Origin: Octopus sinensis | Lineage: Eukaryota | DNA length: 64,000 nt | Direction of reading: 5' to 3' | Assembly (NCBI RefSeq): GCF_006345805.1 | Contig: NC_043004.1 | Coordinates: 82,956,001 to 83,020,000 of the forward strand | Part shown: positions 2,372-61,261 of the stretch, in pieces | How positions within the stretch are numbered: position 1 is the stretch's first letter | How the letters are laid out: the number at the start of each line of letters is the position of its first letter | Program-made: the position numbers and the translations under genes | Notes under the pieces: model-generated | Told to the model about the DNA's origin: nothing | What the model saw: only the letters and a program-made list of their open reading frames with translations | The model's database searches: none

Positions 2372-3454
2372 GCTGTAATTAATTTGTAGAGCATTACATA
2401 TTATCACCAAAAACATAATTCCTCCAGACATTCCAAACATCAGCTGAATCCCGTATACTTTGGTTCCAACTGAGTTGTTTGCGAATTCATATGTTATATA
2501 ACAGCATTGAATGGTGAACAATATTATAGTAAGTGTAGACCCACATTGAGATAATGCGTGTAAATCTTTTAGTAATTCACAAAGACTTTCATGCTGGTTT
2601 AGTATCTGATATAAAATTTTATAGCAGTGTGTACCCGATAGAAATACTCGTGTCTGTTCACTCCGCATTTTCCGCAAAACATTTCGAAGTTTCTCTGACA
2701 AACACTGGAACTCATCTTTTATAAATAACATGGAAAACCCGAACGTGACATGAACAGGCGTTAAAAGCATGTAAGCCAACAAATTTGCCATACAATTTAG
2801 TACTAAAATAAATACAAAATACTTATTCTTACGGGATCCTGGGAAAGCATAGATATCTAGATAATAATGCGGATCAACCAAAACAAGTGGTAAAATTATT
2901 TGGATTGAAATAGATAGCAAACTCACAATACACATATTAGATATGATATAATGCACTCCCTTTTCGTTACACCTTGCCATATACTCAGCATCTTGGTTTA
3001 CTGGAATATAATCACTAAGATCTCTCAACGATTGATTTATTTTTTGCCTGTTCCAAACCACATTTATCGCAATCACAGCTGGAATCATCTTCAGTAATAA
3101 AAGAAAACTTTTCGCTAGTAGCGGTTCAGTATCTTCAATTGAATAATTTACCAAAATAAAATATGGAAATCGTATAATTTCTATTATAAGAATGAAATAT
3201 AGTAGAAAGAGTAACATAGAAAGAATTTGTGTTTTCAATCCAGACGTTTTCCAAATTTCTATATTCATTGTAGACGGAATGTCGGACAAAATAGAAACGT
3301 GTTTAAGCTTCTTCAGAAACGAACTTACAACTGTTTCTTTTAGTTTCTTTGATTGATACTCCTCGATATTTATGTAAAATGATTCATGCATATCGTTAAA
3401 CGTATAAGTTGATTCTTTACTGGAAGGAAGTGCTGACAAAGACTGCAAAGCCAT
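2372..3454 (-). CDS. GRL/7tm_7-like chemoreceptor long exon (TM1-TM6), divergent copy; 361 codons ending at phase-0 donor
   Basis: Open frame with six hydrophobic segments; GR-like IL2 signature EFQCLSEKL...ILNQHESLCELLKDL; ends ...QINYS then GTAAGT (AGC|gtaagt at 2372/2371). Confidence 0.75.
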
Positions 3455-6254
3455 TATATGGACAAAATATTTTCTCGCACACTCTTATTCAGCTACACTT
3501 AGTCTGTTCCGTCGGTACGATAGACGGTATCACTCGTCAGCCTACAATATTTGTATTATTTATACGAAGTAATTAATCATTATTTCTCCTAGCAGTCAAT
3601 TAAAAACTCACTCAACGAGTAAACACGCTAAAATATTTACTTTCTAATCAAGTCATATTACATTTAATATAAGCAACACCTAAATGTATGATTTCTATTG
3701 TGTAGCAGCGTTGCATTATTGTGATATCTGATGTTTTATTTACCATGAGTGGGCAGGTCATTTGTAATTAATTATTAAGTTAATTATTTTTCGACCTCTC
3801 AATACATATCACACAGAATACTAAGATACACTCGTTGTACATACGCCTATACATGAAATATGTATATACGATCTTGAATATACATTTATTTTGTACAAAT
3901 AAGTACGACATAAGCCTTTTATCTACTAATGGATAAACATGGCGCTAGTTTATCGATGGATTAATGTATTCGTACGTTTAACTTTTGGTCGCTACAGAAG
4001 AATTTCTTTCTATATTTAACCAGTGGTAAATTAGTTTTTTGTTGTCTATACATTAAGAAATATTCTCGAAAATAGAGAGTTTATTTTGTGACATAATTCT
4101 ACTACACCTTGACGGATATTTGCTCATTCTAGAATTTATTATTTGGTGGTCATGGAATACACGAGAAAAATATTATTTTCATTTATCCGTGACGTTCTGT
4201 GTGTATGTGATATTAAGGTATGAATATGTGCTTATTTCTTTCCCTGTAAGGTAATAATCGCCTATAATTACATCGGTTGTCGAAATAATATGAACAGTAA
4301 AATCTTTTCCCCTCGAGCGCATGTAAGTTAAACGAATTATCACTTTATGTTTAAACATTTTATACGCCATGATACGAAAATCTATAAGCCCAACAGCTCC
4401 AAAATAGAGAGAAAGTAAGAGGAAATTTGAATGAAACATACACAGCACATATATTTCTCAGCTTGTGTTTTTGTTTTTCACTCAAGACTATGGGCTCTTT
4501 CAAGAAAGGGATTGTTACAAACAAATTCTGTATGGCATTAAAAACTCTCGCAAAAAGTGGGTTAATTTCGTTATAACCACAAGATATTATGTCTTCTCCT
4601 CCGTTCTAATGATATCATTTAACTTTGAGCTGAAATTCACAAGAATAAGCATCCGGATTGCTTTGACATCGCGACAAAATCTTCTCAATTTCGTATAACT
4701 AACCAAGCATAAAATATAAAGCACCAGAAGAGTTGGAATCTTGTCTGTATATATACATACATAGATACACACACACACATACACACACACGCACATATAT
4801 ATATATATATGTATATATATATATATATTATATATATATATATATATATATAATATATATATATATACAAACCTCATTCAGAGATAGAAAAATCCTATGA
4901 AAGTAGTGGTTAGTTACCTATACAAAGAATATTGAATATTATATATAATACTCAACTGCAAGGTAACTATATAAACCGTGATTTGGTTTGTATATATATA
5001 TATATATATATATATATATATATATATATATATATATATATATATATATTGGAATAAGATGAGATGAGAAAATAGAGCGGTAATTAATAAATAAGTCTTT
5101 TTTAATTAAAGGCTTTGACAAACACTCCTTACAGCTGTTTCAATTCATTCTCTCAAAAAATCAATCAGTTAGATTAAAAGGTATTTGACAGTCGAACCAC
5201 TATAGAGGTAGATAAAGATATACAAAGAAACTAGTAGCTCAATACCTACATTTTGAGTAAACGGCTGCAACCCGTAAACTGATAAAGTTTATACATAAAA
5301 GAGCATGATACAAAAGTGAGAGAGTGCTTGGAAGGGAAGTAAGATTGTTTATAATGAAGTCGTAGAACAATATATTCATCTGGACTGTTAAGTATAAGAA
5401 AGTTCAAGTAGATATAATTGGCAAAATTGTCATTTTGTGCTACCATTCCTATTCTTAATAAGTCAATATAAAATTATTATGTAGAGTTTAATACAAGTGT
5501 GTATAGTTACTTATATATATTTAAGGTGGAAAACATTCAGGCAATCTATAACTTATTATAAATATCGAAATAGTTAAAAGACCAAAAATAATATTGACTT
5601 AATGTTAGAGTACTTAACAATTACAATTAAAAGCATGAATAAAGTAAAATCAAAAAATCAAAATAGATAGTGTAAACAGTGAAAACAGATGGAGACAGTA
5701 AACAATTGAATAAAGAATTATACATTATTAACTCTTAAGACTTATTACTGAGCTTGACTAATAAAGATAATGAACGATTGGACAAAATTTAATCTAAAAA
5801 TGTCAGATATGCAGCAGTCGTATTGTGAGATACCGGATGTGTACGTGTCAAGTTGCTAAGGTACGGAGATATCTTATTTAACATAAATAATGGGAATCAT
5901 AGGGAATAAAAATATGCTAGAAAAAGCAGAAATTTTTCTTGTAAGATGTTGGATGTGGAGTATATAAGCAAACAAATTAAATAAATAGGTTCAGTGGGGA
6001 ATGCAAATTACCATAGATTACAAATTGGAACACTGTTATATAATTTCATTTTCCTAACATTCTCAAAGAAATAATAATTATCAGGAGAAACTCTCAGAAA
6101 ATTCTAGGTGTGGTTTTTACGATTAAGTGCAGACGCTACTCACGCTGATGAAGAAAATGTCAATGAATACTTCAATATAAACAACACCTACGATCTAATA
6201 GTCATTTAATACAATCGGAATGGAAAATTATCAAACCAAATACATTGAAACTGG

Positions 6255-59330: not shown

Positions 59331-60218
59331 GATGCAAGGAGGACAAGGACAGGTCATTCGGAACTGGCTTTCCTCAGTTGAGTTCCAGTTTATCTTTGCA
59401 ATTTCGGTTGGTTATAACTCGAGATTGCTCCAATATGGCATGCCGCAAGAAAAAACTAAGCTAAGAGCATTAGATTCCTTTGAAGAAAAGAAATCAGCGA
59501 ATGTATACGAAACCAAGGACGGAAAAAACGGAGAATGTTACACAAATACAAATAACAGGACATAGCAACAGGTGTCTTTTGAATAAGGACGAATTAAATT
59601 AAGCTGGTGTGTGTGGCAGTAAATACATACATACATCTCTCTCTCTCTCTCTCTCTATATATATATATATATATATATATATATATATATGTGTGTGTGG
59701 TGTGTGTGTGTATGTATGTATGTATATGTATGTATATATATATATATATTATATATATATATATATATATGTATATGTATATATATGTATATATATATAT
59801 ATATGTATATATATGTATATACATATAAGTGTATATATATATATGTATATATATGATTAGCATGTGTTTATGTATATATATAATATATATATATATATAT
59901 ATATTCATGTATATACGGACACATATATTGATATGCATCTGTATGCTTATCTGTATGGATGTGGTTGTGCGCAGCATATATGTCTTTGTTAAATAGGGAT
60001 ATTGAGAGTAGGTGCTGAAGTGAATTTCACTGTTTGTATATGTTGCCAGAATATATTTCGATCAGAAACACACTTCAAAAATAACTTTAACTTGGTGTTT
60101 TGCTCAATGAATAAAACGTAACTAGGCGTGTTGGTTTCAAATAAGTCTAGATACTACTTCCACTAACACCTGTAAACGAATTCTTGAATTTAAACAATAC
60201 TTACGAAGGAATAGTCAT

Positions 60219-61261
60219 TTAAAACAATTGAAGCAGGATATTAGAAAAACAAATATTAATATTCAAATCAAGCTGAAGATCTTTGTATATTAATAGGAAA
60301 CATCTAGATGCTATTCCCATTGCGAAAATCATTTGAGGTAAATATCTTTTTGATTTTATTAATACACTGGGGATTTCATGTGGCAGGACGAAACAAGTAA
60401 TAGCGGACAGGAGAAATGTAATGGCGGCCGTAATATGAGACGTTTTGTTCTTAATCTCATGTAATCTACAATGTGTGTGTAGCTGCTTAATTATCTTATT
60501 TAATATATCAATACAAGGAGTTTGGACGGGAGATATGTTTGTATGATCGTCTTGTTTACCCGGTAAATTATACTGAAATTTCGTTGATAAGTATTCATAC
60601 ACATCTATCATAATTAACAGAAATCCAACGTGTACTATAGTATTTGATATGATAAGACTTGTCACACATACATTTATCGTGCACTTAATTACTAAACTAA
60701 TTAAAATCAATTCGCTCACACGCAATATCTGGAAAGCCATTACATGAAAGAGGAAATCCGGATCTAAAGTGTCAAACGTAAAGCAACCTGGAACTCAGAA
60801 ATCACCACCACACTATAACATATGTTATATATGACAAAACATGTACCCTGCGTGTGATGCACAGCCATATCTTGAACAATTTCTAGGAACAGTTTCTAGG
60901 AATGCGGTTACCGAATTCATTGATTGATTGGCAGATATGAGATCTGTGTCAAAACATATTTATGAAAATTAAACATGGTTATATCTTCAGCAAAAGAAGA
61001 ACGCTTTTCCCGGAGAGCGACCCAAGGTTTCCTTTCGAATAATTCATTATAATAAGCGCAGCAAACATAATATCGAGAAAATGAATACATAAATGGAATT
61101 AAAATATAAATTATTCCTCTCTTTAATCCATAATCTTTCCATTGTTCTATAAATATCCCACGAGAAAAGAATCTTGTAAGCGAAAGATGTTTAAATTTTA
61201 GGAGGAATGAATATGCAATAGTATTTTTGATTGTATTTGAGTTAGATTGATCAGTATTCAT
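60219..61261 (-). pseudogene. GRL-like exon, subfamily B, with stops and frameshifts
   Basis: ILNKIIKQ..H, ITCFVLPHEI and YLPQMIFAMGIASRCFLLIYKDLQL align with IL2, TM5 and TM6 of subfamily A; ORF broken at about 60917; no canonical donor at the expected site. Confidence 0.7.

Follow-up and report, generated by a model that had tools for sequence, protein, structure and literature searches.

The analysed window, 64,000 nt of Octopus sinensis NC_043004.1 (82,956,001-83,020,000; position 1 is its first letter), is very probably the middle of one large gene, LOC118764605, of the insect-type gustatory receptor (GR) or gustatory receptor-like (GRL) family of seven-transmembrane ion channels, in which alternative long exons are spliced to one shared set of C-terminal exons. 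A first-pass annotation of this DNA had counted seven full-length exons on the minus strand, six of 351 codons if frameshifts are allowed for and one of 361, together with a remnant. This count was confirmed by tblastn with exon A as query and by a listing of open reading frames (ORFs). Five of the seven copies are intact and stop-free and indel-free from their own ATG: A (52032..53084), C (47853..48905), D (44661..45713) and E (34388..35440), with 1053 nt or 351 codons each, and G (2372..3454), with 1083 nt or 361 codons, which represents a divergent subfamily and is 34% identical to A. They encode the transmembrane helices TM1-TM6, and in each exon the two remaining frames contain 20-39 stops. 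The window is AT-rich (~31% GC). The other two full-length copies are frameshifted. Exon B (49957..51007) lacks 1 nt at each of two sites, positions 328 and 630 of A, and is either a pseudo-exon or an assembly error; in exon F (25486..26539) the frame is shifted by one inserted nucleotide near codon 32.

All seven full-length copies, B and F included, are directly followed in phase 0 by GTAAGT, as had been proposed for a single invariant donor after TM6. In exon A the hexamer occupies positions 52031-52026, in exon F the junction reads CAG/GTAAGT, and at the full-length copies the donor has nearly always the form GTAAGTAT. On the minus strand of the window this octamer occurs nine times, each time at the end of an array copy; the plus strand has two occurrences. 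The phase-0 GTAAGT is also retained in an internally deleted copy (46756..46900, minus strand), which fuses the conserved upstream element described below to the last 26 codons (46833-46756). In a degenerate copy with stops and broken frames (61261-60219, minus strand; feature 60198..61270), which resembles exon b2 of Octopus bimaculoides, GTAAGT lies 13 nt beyond the stop codon, at 60204. Paralogues of O. bimaculoides that are 30-50% identical in protein kept GTAAGT while the codons just before it vary, thus the hexamer itself is conserved. A chance occurrence of the donor was rejected on the placement of the octamer in the window and on its conservation in paralogues.

A protein search with exon A led to XP_036361414.1, the 'uncharacterized protein LOC118764605 isoform X1' of O. 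sinensis with 421 aa. Its residues 1-351 are identical to exon E (35440-34388). The 70 further residues (AHQLVDHIYAM...IITYSIVAYQTRS, ending TYSIVAYQTRS) are encoded nowhere in the window. Isoform X2 (403 aa), recovered by a profile search, joins a different variable part of 333 aa to the identical 70-aa C-terminus; this variable part lies outside the window and is orthologous to exon b1 of O. bimaculoides. The two annotated isoforms agree with the expected shared C-terminus, which includes TYSIVAYQ. A search with the 70-aa C-terminus itself returned one candidate and missed X1 and X2, and is unsuitable for counting isoforms. In the gene table the coding sequence (CDS) ranges of X1 and X2 end at the same coordinate. 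Counted from the ATG at 35440, the X1 range of 105,115 nt puts the stop codon ~69.7 kb left of window position 1, on the side where constant exons had been expected. The start of isoform X2 lies to the right of the window, therefore the CDS spans at least ~134 kb and the window covers the middle of the gene. That the constant exons of O. sinensis lie ~70 kb left of position 1 is supported by this calculation from the CDS range. Within the window, a constant-type exon with TM7 was found neither with the true 70-aa C-terminus nor with the C-termini of ~50 relatives; as positive control, the same C-terminal queries recovered divergent constant exons from neighbouring genes in the two loci described below. 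The absence of a TM7 exon, first reported for the intervals separating the variable exons, consequently extends to the entire window. Separate genes with private TM7 exons were rejected on these searches.

The full layout is visible in the orthologous locus of O. bimaculoides, in agreement with the idea that variable and constant exons belong to one locus. The C-terminus led to LOC106880487, and its locus of 86 kb (L001) presents on the gene strand 11 variable exons, 10 of them full-length and 1 partial, at 9608-69094, followed by three constant exons. Constant exon C1 (L001 69542-69610) has 23 codons, the acceptor ttttag and the donor GTTAGT, C2 (L001 72540-72629) has 30 codons, the acceptor ctgcag and the donor GTAAAA, and C3 (L001 75935-75988) starts with LIGSIITYSIVAYQTRS and has 17 codons and the stop. 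All three introns are in phase 0, and the last exon begins 6 codons ahead of TY. Nine variable exons are open; the donor is GTAAGT in seven of these, and in b1, and GTAAGA or GTAAAT in two. A further constant-type exon between the variable exons of L001 was not found with the C-termini of ~50 relatives as queries. Two NCBI models of O. bimaculoides, both automated, begin in different variable exons and have a common 3' end. Exon G is the orthologue of b6 (76% identity), exons A, C and D are 74-76% identical to b5, and E and F are additional members of the b5 group. The constant part is identical in 68 of 70 residues between both species, the orthologous variable exons in 76-77%. In the first gene set of O. 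bimaculoides the orthologous constant exons were annotated as a separate 'uncharacterized protein' of 60 aa (UniProt A0A0L8FXQ7), an artefact to which the architecture gave rise during annotation. On the same strand and further downstream than the constant exons, L001 79693-80704 (+) holds an open exon of the variable type with GTAAGT in frame.

The proposed identity as GR/GRL was substantiated once variable and constant parts were joined. The variable exons alone matched no Pfam family, while E plus constant part reached 33.8 bits against 7tm_7 (PF08395; cut-off 26.6 bits) and covered profile positions 31-365 of 370. The joined proteins have 421-431 aa, within the about 350-500 aa of the family. 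Of the hydropathy peaks, six fall within the variable exon and the seventh within the constant part, and the helices of an AlphaFold (AF2) model agree. This model was calculated from an 8-sequence alignment and is of moderate confidence (predicted local distance difference test, pLDDT, 58.9; predicted template modelling score, pTM, 0.52); it replaced a single-sequence model that was unusable (pLDDT 37.5). The top 16 PDB matches of the AF2 model in Foldseek were all insect OR, Orco or GR structures, including 8v02, 8v3c, 7lic, 6c70, 8jme, 8vc2 and 8jm9, with E-values of 1e-4 to 0.1 and TM-scores of 0.4-0.56; the matches after these were unrelated, with TM-scores < 0.2. A sequence-only profile search of the PDB yielded chance matches only. 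In a phmmer search against 1.84 billion representatives 55 relatives were obtained, the named ones from Octopus, Sepia, Haliotis, Littorina, Babylonia, Batillaria, Solemya and an annelid, and all ten full-length relatives tested pass 7tm_7. In insect receptors, TM7 with the TYxxxxxQ motif lines the pore. The octopus C-terminus TYSIVAYQT retains T, Y and Q of the motif TYhhhhhQF and has T in place of F, thus three of four motif positions; partial TM7 motifs have been accepted for GRLs (PMC7746228). Animal GRLs are defined by Robertson and Benton through their three phase-0 introns at the 3' end (PMC7746228). Phase-0 3' introns are present here, with the donor after TM6 in the window and the three introns in O. 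bimaculoides, as a match in phase and in general placement near the 3' end.

From these elements a mechanism may be proposed. Each long 5' exon would contribute its own ATG, the N-terminus and TM1-TM6, the receptor-variable part, and would end at the strong phase-0 donor GTAAGTAT. One variable exon would be used per transcript, and its donor would be spliced past all downstream variable exons to C1. The exons C1-C3 (23, 30 and 17 codons, phase 0) would supply the loop that follows TM6, and also TM7, which carries the TYxxxxxQ motif. The locus could in this way encode at least five receptors from the window (A, C, D, E and G), plus others from flanking exons, all with a common C-terminus; the use of A, C, D and G in transcripts is presumed. 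How an exon is chosen bears on a conserved element of ~90 nt before the ATG (53085..53175, minus strand, for exon A), common to A-D and to O. bimaculoides b3/b4/b5. It consists of a TATAAAT-like box, followed by TTGCATTCAGG ~57 nt ahead of the ATG. Read as sequence, the element may be either a TATA plus initiator core promoter or a pyrimidine tract with a CAG splice acceptor. We lean slightly towards an exon choice by a promoter before each exon; the alternative is splicing from a 5' leader exon, either common to the variable exons or private to each. Mutually exclusive splicing of internal variable exons at the same locus, with a 3' acceptor ~57-90 nt before the ATG and a non-coding leader, shared or private, is a serious possibility to which we give somewhat less than even credence. 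A pyrimidine-rich tract ending CAG/G indeed lies upstream of most variable exons, for example TTTTGCATTCAG/G in b4/b5/A-D and TTATTTTCTTTATTTGCCACAG/G in b2; acceptor-like sequences precede other variable-exon subfamilies as well, and the tract looks equal in quality to the constant exons' true acceptors. Old paralogues are homologous only from ~90 nt ahead of the ATG onwards, and a branch point with tract would account for this just as well as a core promoter. Against internal exons, the TATAAAT-like box is positioned ~27-35 nt before CAGG, as in a TATA plus initiator promoter, and in b3 and b4 another AG precedes the putative acceptor by 11-12 nt. If every exon had a real acceptor, chain splicing of neighbouring variable exons would be favoured, but the annotated models of X2 and of LOC106880487 skip these. 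RNA pairing of the Dscam type between the donor flanks and the region upstream of C1 gave no signal in L001 (Z-scores -0.6 to +2.3), and insect GR loci of the same design have been described as alternative first exons (PMC6175461).

Several observations count against one gene with alternative long exons, or weaken parts of this interpretation. The position of the constant exons in O. sinensis was computed from the CDS range, and X1 and X2 are automated Gnomon models. Among the window exons only E is part of an annotated product, and an exact look-up of constructed isoforms of A, C, D and G with the constant part found none of them in the protein collection. With the constant part attached, G just passes the 7tm_7 cut-off at 26.9 bits, and A, 70% identical to E, stays below it at 20.7 bits. 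Two of the seven full-length copies are frameshifted. The ratio of non-synonymous to synonymous substitution rates (dN/dS) is 0.5-0.8 between paralogues and orthologues, which indicates a moderate constraint only, and exons C and D differ by 15 non-synonymous versus 1 synonymous change (dN/dS about 4), numbers too small for a test. Upstream of E (35441-35640, minus strand), the sole window exon in a RefSeq product, a block of ~60 nt (TATAAAT…TTGCATTCAGG) is deleted. Since the element may be an acceptor and is missing before E, the step of an own promoter for each exon is weak.

Part of these observations would be expected if most copies in the window were unused young pseudo-exons and the gene made only the one or two annotated products, which we regard as unlikely. 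Besides the annotation of E only and the frameshifts in B and F, five more dead fragments are present. Exons A-D are 93-96% identical to each other, and open frames of recent duplicates such as A, C and D could last unselected for a time; dN/dS among these three is 0.7 to over 1, with few changes. Against this reading, G and b6 are both open across 361 codons at a synonymous divergence (dS) of 0.16, A and b5 have a dN/dS of 0.48 at a dS of 0.28, and O. bimaculoides has nine divergent open variable exons with conserved donors. An open frame of 351 codons is furthermore unexpected by chance at 31% GC, as illustrated by the stops in the other frames. Signs of use may be seen in the open frames, the dN/dS values of 0.5-0.8, the retained donors and the strong conservation of the constant part. 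The array evolves by birth and death, with A-D as O. sinensis-specific tandem duplicates of a single b5-like exon in units of 2.1-3.2 kb; several fragments are dead, as are F and, unless its deletions are an assembly error, B. Most improbable of all is that each exon forms a stand-alone single-exon gene for a six-TM protein, made by read-through of the GTAAGT to the next stop. The read-through tails are short and open, and the public Logan contig SRR11869384 (1609 nt) from a related animal, derived from either a DNA or an RNA run, carries an unspliced ORF. The contig's variable exon is 58% identical and runs into the same tail (…VSISFLYLL); an RNA run would make it an unspliced transcript. Yet the tails differ among the copies and are unconserved while the donor is conserved, exactly the contrast that had been noticed in the window at the outset. 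Without the constant part no protein family was matched, the family signature and the pore helix TM7 reside in the constant exons, and the annotated products are spliced.

Apart from the exons of the single large receptor gene proposed here, the window contains remains of further copies and mobile elements. Dead variable-exon fragments with a degraded donor were found on the minus strand at 8441-8178 and at 7791-7334 with 6382-6320, and another (23901..24214, minus strand; 24214-23901) spans residues ~180-284; these extend the list of the first-pass annotation. The spacers separating A, B, C and D are part of the duplicated 2.1-3.2 kb unit, and no credible ORF was found in them. They had been described as flank, a remnant of a short interspersed nuclear element (SINE) and microsatellite. 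The microsatellites, (AT)n, (TG)n and (ATAC)n, are present; the SINE is weakly supported, with one further dispersed copy (10072-10190) and no tRNA-like head. On the plus strand, thus antisense to the receptor gene and within its long introns, lie ORFs of retrotransposons without long terminal repeats (non-LTR) at 676-1482, 10911-14315, 14947-17478 and 55993-57722, with Exo_endo_phos endonuclease, RVT_1 reverse transcriptase, zf-RVT and PHD domains. One of these ORFs accounts for a GC-rich block (56% GC) at 12-14 kb. Two near-identical ORFs form a head-to-head inverted pair, 38187-38717 (-) and 38705-39355 (+), and a related third ORF is situated 3 kb off at 41771-42448 (+). The ORFs of the pair are cysteine-rich, have the motif YVGLTEGNFKxRFNNH and gave no Pfam match at E <= 0.001; together with the third ORF they probably belong to an uncharacterised mobile element.

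The same design recurs in the neighbourhood. LOC118764606 (CM016866.1:83050339-83098122; L003) has two variable and three constant exons at L003 10001-37784. The first variable exon (L003 10001-11014, donor GTAAGT) is the only one annotated in O. sinensis. The second (L003 23267-24277) is open, 43% identical and ends at the donor GCAAGT of a GC-AG intron; its orthologue is carried by the O. bimaculoides protein A0A0L8FL56 ('Gustatory receptor'). The constant exons are located at L003 27093-27164, 30160-30258 and 37704-37781. In O. bimaculoides the orthologue of LOC118764606 ends ~7 kb upstream of b1, with its last exon at L001 2362-2448 (+), and downstream a gene similar to LOC118764607/608 is arranged tail to tail, with constant-type exons at L001 84005-83901 (-) and 83599-83537 (-). 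More GRL genes with consecutive locus numbers on the same chromosome are LOC118764607, LOC118764608 and LOC118764609; the first two are listed with at least three isoforms each ('isoform X3'). A second type of constant C-terminus (…VFLNRLTTESHGIDVGGCFVITPSSTLTMIGSFITYILVVIQTK) is common to the LOC118764607-609 group and to O. vulgaris CAI9727297/305. Together this suggests a cluster of multi-isoform GRL loci, and since neighbouring loci share the layout, the multi-isoform design is a property of the cluster and not of a single gene. A far-reaching extension, which we put forward as speculation, would be a hidden octopus repertoire of at least four adjacent multi-isoform loci (LOC118764605-608) with dozens of receptors, an own promoter for each exon and one isoform per sensory cell as in protocadherins, in a design dating to the protostome ancestor or arising repeatedly. 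The reason suggested is that exons can be duplicated safely where an ancient phase-0 intron follows TM6.

Cephalopods would have more chemoreceptors than gene counts indicate if one locus encodes ten or more GRL receptors. Studies of chemosensation in octopus have focused mainly on nicotinic-like chemotactile receptors and G protein-coupled receptors, and LOC118764605 and its neighbours offer concrete isoforms that can be tested. For genome annotation, single-exon 'six-TM' ORFs and the 60-aa orphan A0A0L8FXQ7 are to be read as pieces of one gene. A long exon followed by three short phase-0 exons now occurs in a mollusc and in insects, and it can be asked whether this structure is ancestral to the GR superfamily or recurrent. 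The first-pass annotation knew of no molluscan precedent, and our literature search likewise retrieved no description of cephalopod GRLs or of alternative variable exons in lophotrochozoans, with a mention in Robertson 2015 remaining possible; the NCBI annotation already lists two isoforms. The design is standard in insect GR/OR genes and, in a cephalopod, is partly captured by the NCBI annotation with two isoforms per species. It is no new mechanism.

The closest likeness is to the insect loci Gr28b, Gr39a and Gr23a of Drosophila and Gr60a-m of Blattella, which belong to the same superfamily and combine long exons with three short phase-0 exons. Tandem long exons in such loci cover the protein as far as TM6, and phase 0-0-0 introns connect each of them to the same three short last exons, which encode a conserved C-terminus that includes TM7 (PMC6175461). 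Blattella germanica Gr60a-m comprises 13 isoforms, some isoform exons are pseudogenic and the expansion is lineage-specific (PMC6175461); the octopus array resembles it in both its pseudogenic copies and its lineage-specific expansion. The differences are the phylum, Mollusca (Cephalopoda) versus Arthropoda, the introns, which are filled with long interspersed nuclear elements (LINEs) and reach more than 130 kb in the octopus compared to a few kb in flies, and the end of the TM7 motif, QT in the octopus and QF in insects. The octopus proteins also fit the features of non-arthropod animal GRLs (Benton et al. 2020, PMC7746228). With the vertebrate protocadherin alpha/gamma and UGT1A clusters the locus shares variable exons with strong 5' splice sites that are joined to one constant set. 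The variable exons of these clusters each possess an established promoter and no acceptor, and the choice in protocadherins is stochastic. In the octopus, however, acceptor-like sequence precedes many of the exons, and the likeness is one of gene architecture only, as the proteins are unrelated to the GR family. The receptors known for the octopus 'taste by touch' are the chemotactile receptors (CRs). These nicotinic-receptor-like ion channels are a lineage-expanded family of candidate chemoreceptors (PMC11526382). They have a pentameric Cys-loop fold and one gene per receptor, whereas the GRL fold is unrelated.

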